Shown: in pieces, positions 2,420 through 11,929 of the stretch
Position numbering within the stretch: the first letter of the stretch is position 1
How the letters are laid out: every line of letters starts with the position of its first letter
Assembly (NCBI GenBank): GCA_011109175.1
Contig: RDEW01000043.1
Coordinates: 310,001 to 374,000 of the forward strand
Source: Dicyema japonicum
Lineage: Eukaryota; Animalia; Dicyemida
Direction of reading: 5' to 3'
DNA: 64,000 nucleotides
The notes under the pieces: generated by a model
Told to the model about the DNA's origin: nothing
What the model saw: only the letters and a program-made list of their open reading frames with translations
The model's database searches: none
Made by a program: the position numbers and the translations under genes

Positions 2420-4693
2420 GCTGACAGGACAAACCTACGACAAAAGAGGGAAGATGATAATTGAGACCTCCACCGCCTATGTATACTCAACGATCCTGCA
2501 TTTCATACAAAACACCTACTCGACGTAGCGATGAACCTTCTTCTATCGACATCTCATTGTCATCACCGTCCTTGGCCCCTCTTATTGACTGGTCAGTGAA
2601 GTATGACACCAGGAGTGACCACAATCAAATATTTTTGGAGGTCAAAACAAGGTCACGGATAAAAGGACAATGCCCAATGATAACTAACTACAGCCTTGCG
2701 AATTAGAGAGGATTCAAGGAATACGTCGATAATTGTATTGGACTATTAAATTTCCCCACTCTTCCCTCCGTCGAACAATTAGTGAAATGGTTCAACTCCA
2801 TTATAAACGATGCGAGAAGAAGTACATTCCTATGGGGAGACAACCTACGTCATCAAAACGTTTCAACACAACGACGAAACATTTGATCAGAGAACGAAAT
2901 AATCTAAAGATGGTAAAATCGCCAACAGAAGAGAACATCAGAAAAATACGAGAATTGAACAGAGAGATCGACAACAACATAAAGACAGAAAATGCAAATA
3001 GATGGACGAGACTATCGAAAACTCTCTTCAAAAACCCTTCAATGCAGAGAGTGTGGAAGTGGATCAAGAACATCAAAAGATCCTCCCCAGAGAGAAAAGT
3101 CGAAGTCTACATAAAACCAGACACTCTGATAAAATACTATACGTCTATCTCCTACAAGAAGTTTTCAAAAGAACACCAAGTATTCCTGAAAAAGATTGAA
3201 CCGAAACGCTCCGATGACTGGATCCTATTTACTAGCCAGGATGTTCGCAGAGCCATATCCAAGGCCAACAACTCAGAGGCCAAAGGACCAGACAACATAA
3301 CCACATGTGAACTGAAGCACCTAGGCCATCGAGCCCTGGAACTATTAGCCTATATCTTCAACCTATCCATTAACACAAATACAATCCCTGAAATATGGAA
3401 GAAGTCTCTAATCAAACCTATTAGAAAACCCAACAAACCAATAGATGAACCATCTTCCTATCGCCCAATATCTATTCTGAGTCCGGTCTCAAGGATCCTT
3501 GAGAGGCTTGTTTTGGAAAAAATACAAGACTCAATCTCAATACCTCCGACCCAGCACGGATTCCGGGATAACCATTCGACAACAACACACCTTACAACCC
3601 TCACACAATTCATTGCAGAAGGATTTAACTCCCCAAACCCCATCAGAGGACAGTACTTATATCCGTGGACATCACAAAAGCGTTCAGCTCAGTCCCTAGG
3701 AAACTCCTAACAAAGAAAATATACGAAACCAACATCCATCCGAACCTGAAACTTTGGCTTGGAAACTTCCTAAATGGAAAACGAGCACAAGTACTCTGCA
3801 ACAACATCAAATCAAGATCTCGCTATTTCCCAAATAGAGTCCCTCAAGGCTCCCCACTATCACCCCAACTCTTCAATCTCTACATAAACGACATGCCACA
3901 AACCTGTAATGAAAACTGTCTAATCCTCTCCTATGCCGACAATATCATTCTTGCCTCCAAGAACAGAAGCATTCAATCAGCGTCTCAGTTGGCTCAACAA
4001 ATGCTCGACAACCTGGAACTATGGCTCTCGAAGCGGAGACTCGACACATCAGCAGCAAAGTCCTTTGTCAAACTGTTTACCACCTACAAAAAACAGCTCT
4101 GTATCGAACCAAAAGTCTTTATGAAGAACGAAGCTATCTCTAATAACAAAACACCGAAGATTCTGGGAGTAACCTTTGATCAGGGACTCACTTTTATCCG
4201 GCATGTTGAAAACAAAGAACTCTGAAAAAATGAGAATTTTAAAAGTGCTCTCAAAAACACTTAGAGACCAAACTGGTGTCCTTGCCACGATTTACAAACA
4301 ATTTATCTGACCAACGATGGCGTATGCAAATCCTTCATGGGCAATGCAAATGTCACGATCTTCCTCATTGAAATTATCCGCAATCGAAGAGACTGCAATA
4401 AAGTTAATTGGACCAGAACACAATATCCAACCCATTGAAAACTTTTAATCGAACTACAACGGAAACTATTAAAGGAGGCTGTTCTACCGAGCTGCCCTCT
4501 ATTCCAAATACTATCGAATTATCTACAATCATACAGAAATTTTGAGCCGATGCCATGTCCAATGAGAAGAGCTGTTCAGGATTCTCGACCCCGCCGTACT
4601 CTTCCTCACCTTTGTCGGTCTGGGATCATTTAGTTATATGAGAACTTTTATTTCTTTCTCTTTGACCCAGTGATCCTGGAGGTAATAATAATA
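2420..4693 (+). mobile_element. 5'-truncated APE-RT non-LTR retrotransposon (LINE, jockey/I-like), frameshifted
   Basis: APE C-terminus (SDHNQI) and RT motifs GPDNI, YRPISILS, QHGFR, DITKAF.SV, VPQGSPLSP, YADN, KILGVTFD in ORFs 2733-3710 and 3665-4225. 3' hairpin plus (TAA)n tail. 10-bp direct repeat ATCTCTACAG at 2410-2419 and 4694-4703 (TSD). Confidence 0.9.
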
Positions 4694-5154
4694 ATCTCTA
4701 CAGTATTAATAGAACGAGGTTAAAGTCCCCCAATAGATATGACCGTGTTTATTAGAATAAAGTTAAAATAAAACCAGTAACGTACTTGGGTAACTAATCA
4801 AAGACATTTATTTATTTAGAACCATAGGATCTCGAGAAAGAAAGACAGAAAAAATCGTCAGACAGTTCCCGCAATCAAAAGAGCCATCCAACGTATGTGG
4901 TCTCCCATTGTTCCCACTACCGTGCGAAAGAGCCTTCTCTCATCCCTGCAGAGGAATCCGATTGGGAAGGAGAACTTCCTAACCAATCGACTTACTTTTG
5001 ATCTGCGACTACGGGTCGTAGTTTCCGTGAGTACATGCACAATTTACCCGAAAAAAATTTTGAAATATTTAAAAAATGATCATTATTAAATAAAAATTAA
5101 TTATAATATTTTTAATTAAAATAAATATTTATTAAATTCACGTTATAACTGATT

Positions 5155-8032
5155 ATGACAGCAAGGAAACGAAAAAACAAAATTTCTTCCTGCAATCAAT
5201 GTGGGGCTCTTGTAGCTGATGAGGAAAAGCACTTGGCTTCTTTTGGAGTCAATAATCACGAAATTATTGACTCCACTTTTCTATCCCCATTTGTATTTGA
5301 TCAAAAGTTGTTCACTTCCCGTACAGTTCCAATACCACTGGGTACTCTTTAGGCTAACCTTAGATGTTTTAAAGTTGTACAACGGGTATTACTCCGACTT
5401 CATTCTCATGAATCCTGAGGACATGAGACTGTGTGGCCTTATTATTGGGTCACAGTGTTTGATGGTCTCCATTGGTGGAAGTATGAGCAAGATTGTCACT
5501 GTCTTCGCTGACTCAGAGATTGTGAATTTATTCAGTGTTGGGATTCCATTGGATTTCGATCTAACTGGTCCCTTCATGATTAAAGCAGTCAATTCACATA
5601 CAAAGACGTCCACTACTTTGAAAATTATCAAGTTTTCTTTGAGTCTATTCTTCTAGTGTAAATCAGGATGAACTAGAAGACGAAGTCCGTCAGCACATAC
5701 ACTCACGTCTTGGTTTGCACGTGTTAAATATAGTAGTTGGTAATTATGTGATTTCTGGGGGAGAGAAGTCATTCTGGTATTTTGGAGAGTTCTGCACTGT
5801 TAAAATTGTCGATCTGAGTGAGGATCTTCCTTTAGACACCATATCTGAGACCGTAGTAGGAACATCTGTCTCCGAGAAGACTATGGAAAGTTATGCTGAG
5901 TTTCTTTCGGCATGTTCAGAGTTCGAATCCAACTCAGTTGACGAAGTTACTGCCAATTCTATAATAAATGGCCGCGGTTCTGAAGCTCCAATGATAAATT
6001 TTGAAGGATCCGACAATTTTTCTATTCAATTGACTGATTCATTCCCCTTTTCTATGAAGATCGTTCTGGTTGGGCAGGAAACTAAGATAAAATTCGATGA
6101 AAATGAGGCCAATAAGGAAATTCTAGCAGACAACCAGCCAATTTACTTGTCGAATATTGGTGGGATGACTAATCTAGTCGATAAGATGACGAATATTTTG
6201 AATTATTTCAATTCTGACGGTAATTCTGTATGATAATTCAAAGGATTTGGAAAATGTCCAGGAGTCTTAATATCTGGACCGCCTGGCTGTGGGAAGACGT
6301 CGTTGGTTCACGCGGTGGTGAATCAGTTTAACTCATATCTTTTTGTACTTTCTTCACACGAGTGCTATTTAGAGTAAACTTTGCCTAATCTTTCAGTCGG
6401 AGCAAATTTGATGCGAAAATTGCGGAGTTTTTTGCACGTGTTGGCAAATCTAAGAATTCCGTGGTACTGATTGAAGATGTCGACCTACTAGTACCCAGAA
6501 AATGCGAAACGGATACACAGCGCACTGTAAAATATTGCTTTCTGTCCAGATTAGATAGAATTATACACACAGTTGGGTTGTTTACTAAACATAGAATTCC
6601 GCCTTTGTGGTTTGCTGTACTAGTTTTCTCGAGCACGTGGACATTAGTCTTAGAAGGCGACTGGATTGCGAGATTGAAGTGCCAACTCCAAACTCAGCTG
6701 ATCGACTTGAGGTGCTATTCTGCTGATATGCTAGATTTTTAATGCCTGTTTAGCCAGACTGCCTTCAAATTGTGTTTTCCCAGATCAACTAGTTCATGCT
6801 TCTGAGATTGCCTGTGGATATGTGGCTGGGGATATTGCTTCTGTCTGCAGATTAGCCTATCGGGATGCCGTCATTAAGGGGGAACCAATCCAGTTGGACT
6901 TGCTAAGAGGACTCAAAGCAGTTAAACCCAGTTCCATGAAAGAACTTTCCCTGGACGTCCCTCAAGTTGATGTGTTGCTAATAGAAGGTTCGATGGGCCG
7001 ACATTGGCGGACTCGATAAAATAAAAGAGGGAATCATGCAATTGGTGGAATGGCCGATCGTACATCAGGAGGCTTTTTCCAGAATGGGGATAATGCCGCC
7101 ACGTGGAATACTTATGTACGGTCCGCCGGGGTGTTCGAAGACTATGATTGCTAAGGCAATTGCAAACGAGTCTCATTTTAATTTTATTAGCGTTAAGGTG
7201 GATATTTTTATAATTTCCTAGGGATCTGAACTTTTGAGTAAATTTGTCGGAGAGTCAGAGAAAATGGTGAGGGAGCTGTTCGCAAGAGCACGTGCAGCAT
7301 CACCAGCAGTTGTCTTCTTTGACGAAATTGACGCTTTGGCACCTGGAAGAGGCTCACATTCAGTCACAGACAGAGTCTTGGCTCAGTTATTAACGGAATT
7401 AGATGGAGTAGAGACTCTATGTCAGGTTGTGTTCATAGCAGCCACCAACAGGCCTGACATGATCGATCACGTGGGTCTTTAAGTTTATTTTAGGCTTTAT
7501 TGAGACCGGGAAGAGTGGATAGACTTGTATATGTGTCCCTCCCTGATGAGGCAAGTAGGAGAAAAATCTTTGATATTCAGTTGAAGCAGAAACCTCTAGC
7601 AAGGGACGTGGTTGTTGGAGACCTGGCTCGTTGTACTGATGGATATTCTGGGGCTGAGGTTGTGGTTTTATATATTTCTAGATTGTGGCGGTCTGTCAGG
7701 AAGCAGCCTTAGAGGCTCTTACGGAAAATATCAAAGCAAAATGTACCGAAGGGCGGCATTTTATTTTGGCTTTGAAGAAAATAAGGCCTCGGACAGATAT
7801 GAAATTGCTTGAAATTTACAAAAGTTTTTCGGGTTTTGTTATTAATTGAGTTGTAGAAATTAATTCAGCAGCTGGCGGGAGATTGACTGATTTAGGGGAA
7901 AATAATGATTCTGAGAACAGTGATGATGTGAAGGTTGGTGAAACTTCATCTAGTCTCCGATTTTTTGTTTCATCTGCTGTTTTGGGAACTCTATTTGCTG
8001 CTGGAGTTTATTTGGTTCTCAAAATTAAATGA
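5155..8032 (+). CDS. AFG2A: Double-AAA ATPase AFG2/SPATA5/Drg1 (60S maturation factor), multi-exon. Ends at 7849 if the last intron is retained, 8032 if it is spliced.
   Basis: D1 Walker [10 protein letters not shown]2 [24 protein letters not shown] (SPATA5-type), [26 protein letters not shown]. Frame is maintained by 22-25-nt GT-AG introns (e.g. 5342-5363, 5632-5656, 7198-7221, 7471-7493). Confidence 0.9.
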
Positions 8033-8104
8033 CTACTTTTTTAATTTAATATATATTTTATTAATTTTGTGAAATTTTAGACAATTCACAGATTTTATAG
8101 TCTC

Positions 8105-8270
8105 AGATGGCTCAGTGTAATAAGCTCCGGACCTAAATCAGTTGGTTTCGTGTTCGAATCTCGCTGCTGGCAATTTGGTTGAAGGTTCCACACATGCTTC
8201 TGGGTTGACGAGTGACATCGTCGTCAGTGTTTCATCAGTGCGGAATCGGATTATTTTCTGGGACTAACTT
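8105..8270 (+). mobile_element. tRNA-derived SINE family A, 5' part
   Basis: A-box-like TGGCTCAGTGT (8108-8118) and B-box GTTCGAATC (8152-8160). Body matches the reverse complement of copies at 33670, 51780 and 60180. Confidence 0.7.
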
Positions 8271-8393
8271 AAAGAATTGGAAAATCCCACCAAACTGAAA
8301 AATCGGACATTACCTTCCGTCTACATTTTGATGGATTTGTCTTAGATCGTGGAGTACGTTTATTTTTTAACTTCTTTATTAGTGGATTCTTAA

Positions 8394-11300
8394 CCCTGTA
8401 AGCGTCAGCGATGACACATGTCGTTTCTAAGAAATTTACGTCATCTACGAATTATATGTCCGTTTTTTGTTATTCTGTGCCTACCTATAATGAATTTCAG
8501 GCCAAAAAGACAGAAATTACCTGAGAAAGGGACAAGTGATATTTTTGAAGGATCAAGTGACTTTGAGGATTAAGGCGATGAATCAGTGATGAACCATCTA
8601 GTGACGATGCTTCCGGTTACATCTTCCGATTAGTCGTCAGGCGGAAAAGAAAGATCACCTTTTAACTTTAATGCTGAAGGTGGCGTGAAATTCACAGTTA
8701 AAAATAAAGATAATTCGCTGGAGTTCTTTGATCAGTTTTAGGATGATTCTATTTTGGTTATTTGGTTACTCAGACTAATATTTTTATAAAACAATTTATC
8801 GACGAAAATCTTTGGACTGTTTCAAAAAAATCTCGTGCATTAAAATGGTTCGATACTAATGTTGATGAAAAAGACCAGTAAGAAATTGTGCGCAATGTAG
8901 AAAGGAAGATAAAGAAAAGGATATCGTATTGGTGCAAAGAGTGCGGAGTGGCTGTGAGTTGTGCCATGTTTTAGAAGTTGGAATACCAAATAAATATTTT
9001 TTAAATATGTAAAACTTTTATTTTCCCTTTATTTGTATATGTGAAAAATTTATTAACTATAAGGGAGAGCGGCTGCTGACATTACGGAGTAAACGTTTCC
9101 GCGACAACTGCGATACCAATTCGTTTCCTCAGCCAGACCGCTTCCCGCACGTCGTTCTTAAGGTGGGCCAATTTCCCCCTGATTTCCTTCAGGAAAGAGG
9201 CTGTAATACTTCCGCCGCACCAGACGTCTCGATTGCTACCGGTACAAAACGGTAGCGGTCTCCAATTTCGCCATATTTTTTAATCTTGATTTTCTCGGCC
9301 AGATCGGCTGCCGATCCAGCAGACTGCGCCGAGCTGATTATCATCGAGTTCGAGAAAGAGTCCACAACAGTGCAGTCCCATACGAGCGATTTTCCTTCAG
9401 TGAACGGAAAGATAGTTAACCCATCCGGTCTTTTCCCATCTCCGCGGTCCAATTCCACAGGCTCCAGTACTGCCAGGAAGCCTGCCGCTTCAAGAGCTCG
9501 CATGACAATGTTGTTCATAGCAGCATGGCGGGGTGCTCTGCCCGCACTCCTTTTGCACGAGAGCGGGTGCAGCCCTTTGGCATCGACGATCCCTCCACAA
9601 CGACATTGGTGTTCGACGCAAACATCAACTCCCAGGCGTTGTGCGATCCCAATCCGAATACAGTCATCGTCCAAAAGGGTCCCCAGGGAGGAACACGGGA
9701 GTGCATCCAGCCACGCTCCGCTCCCATGGTTGGCGGCGGACACGAGGCATGCAAGACGATGCTGGTTGGCCTCAGACTTTAGCACGTCGAAGATATTCTT
9801 GGAGTAGATATCATCCCAGTCACGTTGCCTCGAAGGATCGTTCGGCATATCCAAACCAGTTTCACACCATTCGCGACGAGCTTCGTCGAAGACTCTTTCC
9901 CAAGAGTCCGGTTGTAAACGTAGGATTTCTTGGACCAAAAGGCTTCCACTTGAGAGCGATGACACATATGCTGGATAGGCGATCTCCAGCGCCGACCTGA
10001 GACCCGTTCCTCCGAGGCGTGTAGGAAGCTTGCATTGGTTCCAACTCGGCACATCAAAGTGGATGTTTAGAAGCAATTCAGCTGATTTTCTCAATGTCCT
10101 ATCCAGTGACAGGAGGATGTCACGATGTTTGAAGCAGGGAGAACATCGGAGAGCATATAGGAGTTTGGGCAAGCCGATGCTATTCTTCAAAAGGAAGAAC
10201 GCTGTATGACCATCGAGTAAGGAGAGTTTCTCCGTGACTCTAGAGAGTTCATCCTCTTTTGTTAGTAGATGGCTCCGCAGTTCCTTTTCGTCAAGTGGGC
10301 ACCCAAGAAAGTATGTCCGCTCCCTGGGTACGACAGTAATTCCAGGTAGTACCGAGTTGAAAGACTCGACCACGTTGATAAAATCACTCTCCGAGTATGT
10401 GATATTTATTAGCTCCGATTTCTTTATGTTTATCTCAAGTCCGAGGTTTCGTAGTGCCGGCACGGCATGTGACAGAACGTCGTGAACTTTTCTCCACAGC
10501 CCTCCAATCGTGGCGTCATCAAGATACCAGAAGTTTAGTTGTGTGTTGATAGAGCGGACAATTTCATCGATGGCCAGAGCGAAGAGTAGTGGACCAAGTG
10601 GGTCCTCTTGTTGAACTTCAGTCTCCGAACAGATAATCTTGTCCCCGAAAACCAGTGAAGAATTGGTGGTTCCGTAAGCGAGGAAGACAAGTGGAATAAG
10701 TTCCGGGGCTCGTTTGCTTGTAGTTTCGAAAATTTGATCCCTCCTCAATGAATTGAAGGCATTGCAGATGTCCAGCTTGACCCCAATGTATGGGTTTTGT
10801 TCGTATTTCTGTCTAAAAAAACACCTCGCAGCATGCACTGCCGCCTCGCATCCGTTCCTTACACCAACCCCCAGTTGGAGGGGGAAAATTCTTCAGATAT
10901 TCTCGGACAGACAATGCTGCATGCGATTTTCGCTGTCAGTCTTCTGAAATAGTTGCCGACTGCGATGGGGCGGACCCCACCTTCAGGTTTTTTGAAGGCC
11001 AATAAATGTGCACTGAAAAGAAGCTCCCTTGCGTGGGGAGGAATATCTCCGTTCAAAATACGCATAACCAGTTTTGTAATTGATTTGACAAGGTTGCAGC
11101 CAGCTTCTGCAGTAGCCTCCGCCGTAAGATCCTTGATGTGACCCGGCCGCAAGCCATCGATACCTCCACTGCTACTCGCCGCAAAGGACGAAATGCCGCG
11201 TCGCACTTCGCCTTCGGTGACGGTCATCCTTGACAAATTTCCCGGAAGCACGAATGGGCGGTAATCTTCCGGAGCACATGGATGTTTATGTCTGAGTAGA

Positions 11301-11929
11301 TCCAGCACCTCAGGTGTCGCAGCCATAACGGTTTCGTCGCTGGCAACGACGAACGCCGCTCAGACGTCGCCTTCGAATAGTTTGCGGTTTACTCTCTCTT
11401 TAAGTTTTCCGGGCCATTCAAATAAACCGGAGGATTCAGAATGTCTTGATTTCTTGACTTCCGTCTTGGTGAGAGAATGCACATATAAAACCTGGATGTT
11501 CTTTATTTTTTGAGGAAAGGGAGTTCCCAAGTGTCGTGCTTTTCTCTGTATTCCGTTGATCTCCTTGGAGTCGATAAATGGAATTCCAAGGTTCATCGGA
11601 GCAAACCTGAGGAGTTTTAGCCAGGCCTCCAGGTCGTCGGACGTGAGAGCATCGTCAATTGCAAAGGCCAGGCATGTACCCGCGCTTTGTATATTAAAAA
11701 ATATTTCTACGTATACAAAACTTTTATTTTTCTCGGAGTTTGCTATCAGAAGTTAAGCCGTAAGGGGTGGGATGTACAATATTTGAAATTACACCACAAG
11801 TCAACTAAAATGATAAACTTAGGTATAAAACCCGATTTTAGAGCTTAAACAAAACTTTTAAAAATATAAAATTCTTAAGAAGGTGACAATTTGGGATTGG
11901 TCCACTTAAACATTAGTGACACTAACAGG
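8394..11929 (+). mobile_element. Internally deleted piggyBac-like DNA transposon interrupted by a CRE element
   Basis: TTAA at 8390-8393 and 11930-11933 with imperfect TIRs (CCCTGTAAGCGTCA versus reverse complement CCTGTTAGTGTCA). N-terminal-like LEFFDQF.DDSIL..VTQTN at about 8715-8785. Frameshifted C-terminal Cys ribbon CAQC..SYWCKECGV..C at about 8885-8990. Confidence 0.65.
9025..11716 (-). mobile_element. CRE-clade-like non-LTR retrotransposon (RT + CCHC + restriction-like endonuclease), 5'-truncated, frameshifted
   Basis: GGIDGLRPGH, VRPIAVG..RRL.AK, QQEDPLGPLLF, WYLDD, C.CG..D..G.H.LSC, RPDG, FVPVAIETSG, C-terminal RGNV in ORFs 9189-10838, 10859-11326 and 11360-11596. 14-bp direct repeat AAAACTTTTATTTT at 9011-9024 and 11717-11730. 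Confidence 0.88.

Follow-up and report, generated by a model that had tools for sequence, protein, structure and literature searches.

A candidate stop-containing last micro-intron and a predicted C-terminal membrane anchor in an AFG2A-like AAA ATPase gene of Dicyema japonicum

The AFG2A-like gene of Dicyema japonicum, a parasite of octopuses, described here, located in a window of 64,000 nucleotides (the whole stretch of DNA that was analysed), raises the question of where its protein ends. The conserved fold of the ATPase is followed almost immediately by an in-frame TGA, which may be either the true stop codon or part of a micro-intron, the removal of which would keep the reading frame open and add a hydrophobic tail to the protein. 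The reading favored here, and regarded as fairly probable, is that of an ordinary last micro-intron, spliced constitutively for the most part, in the gene of an AFG2A-type ATPase of approximately 873 residues, which would end in a lineage-specific linker, a helix, and the residues KIK, in the arrangement of a tail-anchor. The features of the gene as far as the first TGA are as follows:

5155 to 8032, + strand: AFG2A/SPATA5-like double-AAA gene, with 12 exons and 11 GT-AG micro-introns, the last of them a candidate
5342 to 7681, + strand: span of the ten secure micro-introns (22-25 nt, GC 0.25-0.43)
5342-5363, 5632-5656, 6220-6243, 6374-6396, and 6572-6594, + strand: micro-introns 1 to 5
6712-6734, 6966-6987, 7198-7221, 7471-7493, and 7659-7681, + strand: micro-introns 6 to 10
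7682 to 7832, + strand: last exon with homology to AFG2A, the end of the D2 lid, ending in EIYKSFS, with the S at 7829-7831
7833 to 7856, + strand: candidate last micro-intron (24 nt, GT-AG, phase 1, GC 0.25, T 0.54)
7847 to 7849, + strand: in-frame TGA within the candidate intron, the stop of the retained form (KSFSGFVIN and stop)

The gene model was built by hand and yields a stop-free translation from the ATG at 5155, with a product of 873 aa when the last intron is spliced, and 820 aa when it is retained. The spliced translation contains tandem AAA cassettes, with GPPGCGKT in D1, and GPPGCSKT and FFDEID in D2, where both the Walker A and the Walker B are canonical, while the Walker B of D1 reads LIEDVD. 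The P-loop of D1 was assigned from its motif in the translation; the Pfam searches covered the D2 exons, the N-region, and the extension, and the searches of solved structures covered the D2 exons and the N-region. The D2 exons matched AAA and AAA_lid_3 in Pfam. Approximately 330 residues precede D1; the exon of this N-region (187 aa) matched nothing in the PDB or Pfam, so no Cdc48-type N-domain (double-psi barrel plus beta-clam) was recognized, and the N-domains of the Spaf proteins are known to be divergent (PMC5070193).

The closeness of the gene to AFG2A was judged by the bits of the structure matches for each D2 exon. When the four D2 exons are summed, the highest total among the eukaryotic solved structures belongs to human AFG2A (approximately 396 bits, versus some 350 for VCP and 300 for AFG2B), although the archaeal VAT is nearly equal to it in overall score. 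AFG2A leads the eukaryotic matches in exon 6988-7197 (151.7 bits, with VCP at approximately 140 and AFG2B at 108), in exon 7222-7470 (151.6 bits, with 137.5 for VCP and 113.5 for AFG2B), and in exon 7682-7831, where it scores 29 bits and AFG2B 23.9, with VCP absent. Only in exon 7494-7658 is VCP/CDC48 ahead, at 70-80 bits versus 64 for AFG2A and 54.9 for AFG2B. These matches are compatible with a double-ring AAA ATPase of the AFG2A/SPATA5 type, which may release Rlp24/RSL24D1 from pre-60S particles in the cytoplasm.

The exon that precedes the candidate intron aligns with residues 836-884 of human AFG2A, a chain of 886 residues, and KSFS completes the conserved fold. The human homologue terminates 2-9 residues beyond the KSF position, and the fact that the homology ends exactly here is the first argument for the TGA at 7847-7849 being a true stop. 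The 24-mer would then be no intron at all, the protein would be a soluble, canonical AFG2A of 820 residues, and positions 7850-8029 would be a 3' UTR that is open and terminally hydrophobic by chance. This alternative is considered unlikely, but to carry appreciable weight, and the composition of the 24-mer and the coding character of the sequence beyond it bear on it directly.

The micro-introns of D. japonicum form a size class of 20-27 nt (PMC13644364), and the ten secure introns of the gene, each of which is needed for the AAA homology to be read in frame, fall within this class. An automatic census of introns over the whole window returned 27 calls, many of them decoys internal to exons, and was too noisy to weigh a length of 18 nt against one of 24 nt, or to test the rule that introns divisible by three contain stops. 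The preliminary description had placed a 24-nt GT-AG unit at 7833-7856 with an in-frame TGA at 7847-7849, in the same size class as the other introns of the gene, and every coordinate was confirmed on re-examination. The candidate begins with GT, ends with AG, lies within the 20-27-nt class, and is AT-rich and T-rich in comparison with the exons. The GT-AG motif alone is at chance level, given that 42 GT..AG 22-25-mers are found inside the exons of the gene, which is compatible with a true stop. The GC content of the candidate, in contrast, is matched by none of the 42 decoys, all of which exceed 0.30, and its T and GC contents resemble those of the two preceding introns; this intron-like composition speaks against the true stop. 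The 24-mer is thus probably the real last intron, as far as its composition and length can indicate, although two alternative in-frame splices, 7833-7850 (18 nt) and 7824-7850 (27 nt), would also remove the TGA and produce the same tail. The only sequencing runs that contain the locus are four from a single 2019 study, all of them with DNA contigs that are collinear with the genome, introns included, and have Nextera adaptor ends.

Removal of the 24-mer joins KSFS to a further 58 codons, which lead to the TGA at 8030-8032, and the re-translation agrees with the open frame described initially. The features beyond the candidate intron are as follows:

7857 to 7960, + strand: linker of the extension, acidic and predicted to be disordered
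7961 to 8020, + strand: predicted transmembrane helix (Kyte-Doolittle mean 2.07 over 20 residues)
8021 to 8032, + strand: short basic tail, KIK, and TGA stop (8030-8032)
8024 to 8029, + strand: ATTAAA hexamer
8033 to 8100, no strand: AT-rich trough

The codon usage of the extension, scored with a model trained solely on the core of the gene (only 815 codons), gives log-odds of +21.8 bits in frame versus -13 and -58 off frame. Chunks of 57 codons from the core score 10-26, while the downstream controls reach 6.5 at most, and stop-free shuffles of the extension have a mean of 3.7 and a standard deviation of 5.8 (p ~0.0007). Both halves of the extension score at the level of the core, with 0.33 and 0.46 per codon versus 0.32, and both of its structural parts contribute, the linker with +11.2 bits, and the helix plus KIK with +10.6. 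The extension lies within the top 1.7% of the 303 ORF tails of at least 57 codons in the window, and the chance of such an open frame ranges from 0.009, in shuffles, to 0.034, among all the stop-to-stop frames of the window. A codon usage equal to that of the core speaks against a 3' UTR, as does the sequence that follows the second TGA. The AT-rich DNA noted after this stop in the preliminary description was found in the next 68 nt, where the GC content drops sharply, exactly at 8033, to 0.147 versus 0.37 in the extension. A matching AT trough (5035-5165) lies directly before the ATG, and the two troughs bracket the gene; 60-nt windows this AT-rich make up only 2% of the window. The ATTAAA at 8024 is the only canonical hexamer resembling a poly(A) signal (ATTAAA/AATAAA) in 7600-8400, and may work as such in D. 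japonicum. Both the trough and the hexamer are located at 8024-8100, and not after 7849, which speaks against a true stop there. That stops in other genes are directly followed by an AT trough could not be established as a rule, with no more than 2 fitting cases among the 52 ends of high-scoring ORFs.

The variation among the four runs is less favorable to the coding reading. In the core, seven polymorphisms are synonymous and two are non-synonymous, versus none and three in the extension (one-sided Fisher ~0.045). The three in the extension (7861, 7920, and 7926) all fall within the linker, and their density equals or exceeds the synonymous-site rate, a pattern that favors a true stop at 7847-7849. 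This pattern fits an unconstrained linker, and also non-coding DNA. The search for relatives of the tail is on the same side of the argument, given that a word search (7850-8029) and a full HMMER scan (7859-8029; 1.84 billion representatives) were both blank. They were blank even for the sequence itself, and the spliced proteins of the species are apparently absent from these collections, so the result says little. A Pfam search with the extension also found no match. The extension is single-copy in the window, and its derivation from a repeat or a transposon was rejected for this reason. A tRNA or SINE at 8100-8170 is not supported, the results of ARAGORN and Rfam both being negative.

One further possibility, which is regarded as very improbable, is that a recent nonsense change within a former exon removed the extension from the coding sequence, in which case the 24-mer would never have been an intron, and the tail would be decaying. 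Such a relic would account for the good codon usage together with the neutral-looking polymorphism of the linker, but not for a 24-mer with the composition of an intron rather than an exon, nor for the fact that 7833-7856 is invariant across the four runs, while the 174 nt of the extension contain neither a stop nor an indel. The evidence from the reading frame and its boundaries suggests that the 58-codon extension is probably a genuine coding last exon, reached by the splicing of 7833-7856.

The structure predicted for this extension is that of an anchored tail. The linker has a net charge of -4 without the junction E, and -5 with it, and AlphaFold2 assigns it no secondary structure, with a pLDDT of approximately 57-63. 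AlphaFold2 predicts a helix from residue 31 to residue 56 of the extension (block-mean pLDDT 83-95), and the Kyte-Doolittle profile agrees, in keeping with the hydrophobic C-terminal helix of some 20 aa with a short basic tail that had been proposed from the sequence. The tail is the only part of the 873 aa in which the Kyte-Doolittle mean of 19 residues exceeds 1.6, with the next best 19-mer at 1.60. The translation of T-rich DNA tends to yield hydrophobic peptides, but a hydrophobic 19-mer with a mean of at least 2.0 in the last 25 residues is found in only 1.2% of the ORF tails of the window, which is a further point against a chance origin downstream of a true stop. If the intron is spliced, the protein would have the topology of a tail-anchor, with a single transmembrane segment that ends three residues from the C-terminus, and neither a signal peptide nor any other transmembrane segment.

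Tail-anchored proteins form a class by topology, and not by descent, and the predicted dicyemid tail resembles those of the ER and mitochondrial members in its single hydrophobic helix three residues before the C-terminus, with a GRAVY of approximately 2.0-2.07 and a charge of +2. In the ACBD5 mutants of Costello et al. 2017, the tail charge of the ER type is approximately 0 to +1, and that of the mitochondrial type approximately +3 (PMC5450235). The dicyemid tail lies between these two, and far below the peroxisomal tails. The mitochondrial outer membrane or the peroxisome had been suggested initially as the destination of the helix; under the rules of PMC5450235, peroxisomal targeting is unlikely with this charge and hydrophobicity, while the mitochondrial outer membrane stands as one option beside the ER/outer nuclear membrane. 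The tail rules cannot tell these two predicted targets apart.

The in-frame TGA itself was proposed initially to form part of a switch by intron retention. A regulated toggle would imply that splicing and deliberate retention of the intron differ between cells or life stages, to produce membrane-anchored and soluble forms of AFG2A, respectively, and that micro-intron retention decides where 60S maturation takes its first cytoplasmic step. Intron retention is the most frequent type of alternative splicing in organisms with tiny introns; the stop is in the last intron, so that the retained mRNA would have no junction beyond it to trigger decay, and the retained product would end just beyond the conserved fold. 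In-frame stops are expected in retained tiny introns, however, which must not be translated through, and the principle of stop-containing micro-introns of a length divisible by three was reportedly described for Paramecium by Jaillon et al. in 2008. Both of the secure 24-nt introns of the gene contain an in-frame stop, and the candidate is indistinguishable from them. Given that all three 24-nt introns carry such stops, the TGA is not special, and the switch is left unsupported; there are no recognizable regulatory elements, and an unregulated, leaky retention would result in the same two products. A dedicated toggle is therefore considered improbable. The candidate is like other introns of this kind in its 24 nt, its frame-preserving length, and its in-frame stop, and unlike them in being the last intron, placed after the conserved fold, so that its retention would leave the protein complete instead of truncating it.

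Under the preferred reading of a mostly constitutive last intron, 7833-7856 would be removed, or one of the equivalent in-frame choices (7833-7850 or 7824-7850) would serve equally well, and the canonical C-terminus would be prolonged by an acidic, disordered linker of approximately 35 residues, the hydrophobic helix of 20 residues, and KIK. The helix would be inserted post-translationally into a membrane that faces the cytosol, either the ER/outer nuclear envelope or the mitochondrial outer membrane, and the hexamer may be suspended from it by six flexible linkers emerging from the D2 ring. The face of the N-domain and D1 would remain accessible to substrate, for instance the Rlp24/RSL24D1 of exported pre-60S particles. 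The TGA would act as the usual safeguard of a micro-intron of this length and, because it sits in the last intron, just past the conserved fold, unspliced mRNA would yield a soluble AFG2A of canonical length as a by-product.

The characterization of AFG2 as a soluble protein, which underlay the preliminary description, is incomplete. Human AFG2A/SPATA5, of the 55LCC complex, and yeast Drg1/Afg2 have the end of the fold at the same position as the dicyemid protein, and end a few residues later without a transmembrane segment, unlike the form predicted here. In all core eudicots, by contrast, the Spaf-like/AFG2B protein has a C-terminal transmembrane region (PMC5070193), and the CIP111-CDC48D complex of Arabidopsis is located on the nuclear envelope and the mitochondrial surface (PMC12332008). 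CDC48D belongs with CIP111 to the OPENER complex, and the plant complex pulls the homologue of Rlp24 out of pre-60S particles (PMC12332008). The eudicot Spaf-like/SPATA5L1 (AFG2B) proteins, such as CDC48D, are like the predicted dicyemid protein in being subunits of an AFG2-type ring with a lineage-specific C-terminal transmembrane segment, tethered through the end of D2. The eudicot anchor, however, is on an AFG2B-type paralogue that lacks an N-domain, whereas the dicyemid anchor would be on an AFG2A-type protein with its long region before D1, and AFG2B is the lowest scorer among the close relatives tested, so that the dicyemid gene is not a member of the eudicot Spaf-like group. The dicyemid anchor would be an independent gain, in an animal, and the localization is experimental in the plant and predicted in the dicyemid.

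The dicyemid anchor is probably a case of convergence, a variant on a design already known. A real tail would make this protein the first AFG2-type ATPase of an animal to carry its own membrane anchor, and an independent repeat of the gain that occurred on the partner subunit in the core eudicots. Two independent gains would argue that the release of Rlp24 at a membrane surface, at the nuclear envelope or the mitochondria, is advantageous, rather than an oddity of plants, and would also bear on the mammalian SPATA5, which has been reported at the mitochondria without explanation (PMC5838984). In genomes with introns of 22-25 nt, terminal exons can escape notice when a stop-containing micro-intron follows a recognizable fold.

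The AFG2A/SPATA5-like double-AAA ATPase gene (5155-8032, forward strand) lies in a window whose GC content (about 0.34-0.44) and retroelement load are consistent with Dicyema japonicum (PMC6736024, PMC13644364), and the three-frame translation of 5100-8100 revealed very short GT-AG units as its sole interruptions. From the ATG at 5155, the removal of ten introns of 22-25 nt produces a single open frame with two AAA cassettes (D1 and D2), and all the introns of the gene are retained in contigs from four DNA libraries of one sample (a single study of 2019), which are the sole runs covering the locus. The preliminary description had placed a further 24-nt GT...AG unit, of the same size class, at 7833-7856, and these coordinates proved exact; the unit is in phase 1 and directly follows the residues EIYKSFS (final S at 7829-7831). 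An in-frame TGA (7847-7849) ends the read-through product after GFVIN, at 820 aa, while excision of the 24-mer adds 58 codons up to the stop at 8030-8032, as had also been claimed, giving 873 aa.

The identity of the gene is likely AFG2A, judging from the scores of the D2 exons and the divergence of the N-region and D1 lid. Pfam AAA and AAA_lid_3 match the D2 exons and, of the eukaryotic proteins with solved structures, human AFG2A scores highest for the exons at 6988-7197 (151.7 bits vs. about 140 for VCP), 7222-7470 (151.6 vs. 137.5 bits), and 7682-7831 (29 bits, VCP being absent), whereas VCP/CDC48 (70-80 bits) is ahead of AFG2A (64 bits) for the exon at 7494-7658. The summed D2 scores are about 396 bits for AFG2A, 384 for archaeal VAT, 350 for VCP, and 300 for AFG2B. 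Divergence leaves both the N-region and the D1 lid without a good match in Pfam or the solved structures (the lid barely matches any solved relative, at 18 bits), which would rule out Cdc48 itself and is compatible with the Spaf branch. The D1 Walker B motif (6461-6484) reads VVLIEDVD, with the acidic pair ED, rather than the usual hhhhDE, while that of D2 is FFDEID, and the D1 ring is possibly degenerate and without hydrolytic activity. Dicyema japonicum is a parasite said to have flatworm affinities. An AFG2A-like gene has been kept in this species, unlike in the parasitic flatworms, listed without either Spaf or Spaf-like by Kienle et al. 2016 (PMC5070193).

Human AFG2A terminates 2-9 residues beyond the position aligned with KSF, so that the candidate intron starts exactly at the end of the conserved fold, and a complete ATPase would be encoded by either reading, spliced or retained. 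The GT-AG motif alone is worthless as evidence of an intron, given that 42 GT-AG 22-25-mers are found inside the exons of the gene. None of these 42 decoys has a GC content of 0.30 or less; the candidate has a GC content of 0.25 and a T content of 0.54, and the two introns that precede it have T contents of 0.52 and 0.57.

The extension itself resembles coding sequence. In a log-odds model of codon usage trained exclusively on the 815 core codons (those upstream of the 24-mer), it scores +21.8 bits in frame, the other two frames giving -13 and -58, in comparison with 10-26 for core chunks of the same size and a maximum of 6.5 for the downstream DNA. Stop-free shuffles of the extension average 3.7 (sd 5.8; p about 0.0007), and the score is in the top 1.7% of all 303 of the window's ORF tails of at least 57 codons, a set that also contains real exons, with similar contributions from the linker (7857-7960; +11.2) and the helix half (+10.6). 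The chance of the frame staying open is 0.009-0.034. The AT-rich DNA reported after the stop was also confirmed, with the GC content falling from 0.37 in the extension to 0.147 in the 68 nt past 8032; comparable troughs account for 2% of the window, and the gene is flanked by two, at the ATG and at the stop. The ATTAAA at 8024-8029 is the sole AATAAA/ATTAAA within 7600-8400, and the extension is single-copy. On these figures, an open frame by chance is unlikely, even allowing for the genome-wide search behind the preliminary description.

The alternative, in which the true stop is at 7849 and the tail is non-coding, is rather improbable, although two observations favor it. No relatives of the extension were found either by word search or by a full HMMER scan of 1.84 billion representatives; there was no self match either, so the library probably lacks the spliced proteins of the species, and the negative result carries little weight. 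Secondly, among the 16 positions that differ between contigs from the four DNA runs of the one sample, the core has seven synonymous and two non-synonymous differences, while all three in the extension are non-synonymous (7861 I>M, 7920 S>T, and 7926 D>G). All three are in the linker, with none in the helix or the 24-mer, and the linker is therefore essentially unconstrained, a pattern that would be ordinary in a disordered spacer and would also be shown by non-coding DNA. Translation of the tail, whether constitutive or toggled, is nevertheless quite likely, and a membrane-anchoring last exon, mostly in constitutive form, is probable.

The linker is acidic (seven D/E, three K/R) and predicted to be disordered, and a single helix is confidently predicted at residues 31-56 of the extension (block-mean pLDDT 83-95). 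The 20-residue helix core (7961-8020) has a Kyte-Doolittle mean of 2.07 and a summed Hessa value of about +0.3 kcal/mol, which is indicative only. The hydrophobic C-terminal helix noted initially was recovered as the sole hydrophobic segment in the 873 residues, and a comparable end is found in only 1.2% of the ORF tails in the window. The predicted topology matches the tail-anchored class of proteins. Under the GRAVY and tail-charge rules given by Costello et al. (PMC5450235), the combination of a +2 tail and a GRAVY of about 2.0 would fall between the ER and mitochondrial classes. Of the mitochondrial outer membrane or peroxisomal signature proposed originally, the peroxisomal part is unlikely, +2 being well below peroxisomal tail charges. 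A basic N-terminal cluster at 5164-5181 (MTA-RKRKNK) resembles a classical nuclear localisation signal and, if functional, would be an odd companion to a tail anchor; targeting to the inner nuclear membrane is one possibility.

The intron with its in-frame TGA had been read as a possible switch between soluble and anchored forms. All three of the 24-nt introns of the gene carry in-frame stops, as expected of any micro-intron of 3n length, and the TGA is thus no evidence for a switch. Retention of any of the other eight introns would cause a frameshift, and an early stop follows in all but one case, where the frame remains open for at least 30 codons. What is special about the candidate is its position, as the last intron, just past the fold, so that translation of the unspliced mRNA would yield a normal, soluble AFG2A instead of a fragment, and any incomplete splicing would probably leave some soluble product. 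There is no support for a regulated toggle, which is very doubtful, its regulation being pure conjecture.

The gene is a compact island amid retroelement copies, with a reverse-transcriptase ORF on either side (Pfam RVT_1, E down to 3e-23 across both):

2733-4225, + strand, ORF with reverse-transcriptase domain (RVT_1)
9189-11326, - strand, ORF with reverse-transcriptase domain (RVT_1)

Contigs from three of the four DNA runs break at 5033-5035 and 8399-8438 and pass into unrelated sequence, with identical loose ends in runs X1-X3; one 2.4-kb contig overlaps the window by only 40 nt (8399-8438). These breaks just outside the gene have the appearance of boundaries of repeats or of insertion polymorphisms. 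In run X2, a high-depth contig fuses 5103 to 8055, omitting 2951 nt, through a join that links the AT-rich stretches flanking the gene, with six foreign letters between them and just 21 nt on the shorter side. Rather than a deletion allele, this is most probably an artefact of the assembly graph in low-complexity, AT-rich DNA. Past the gene, 8100-8175 superficially resembles a tRNA and includes a box-B-like GTTCGAATC; neither ARAGORN nor Rfam (gathering and E<=1) recovered a tRNA or RNA family there, and the stretch may be a decayed tRNA-derived SINE.

The contrast drawn initially with a soluble Drg1/AFG2 is valid for yeast and humans, but is incomplete, since membrane-located plant forms are known. 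The Spaf-like (AFG2B) protein of all core eudicots has a C-terminal transmembrane region (Kienle et al. 2016, PMC5070193). In Arabidopsis, CIP111 (AFG2A-type) and CDC48D (AFG2B-type) form a ring, with OPNR, OAP1, and OAP2, at the nuclear envelope and the outer surface of the mitochondria, where it takes RPL24C off pre-60S particles (PMC12332008). A mitochondrial location is also reported for mammalian SPATA5 (PMC5838984), and no report of a tail anchor on SPATA5/AFG2A itself was found in the literature searched. As in the core eudicots, the ring would be tethered via its D2 end, a prediction only in Dicyema japonicum, whereas the anchor is on the AFG2B paralogue in the eudicots, and on the AFG2A-type paralogue here, in an animal. 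The tail of Dicyema japonicum, if real, would represent an independent arrival at the eudicot design.
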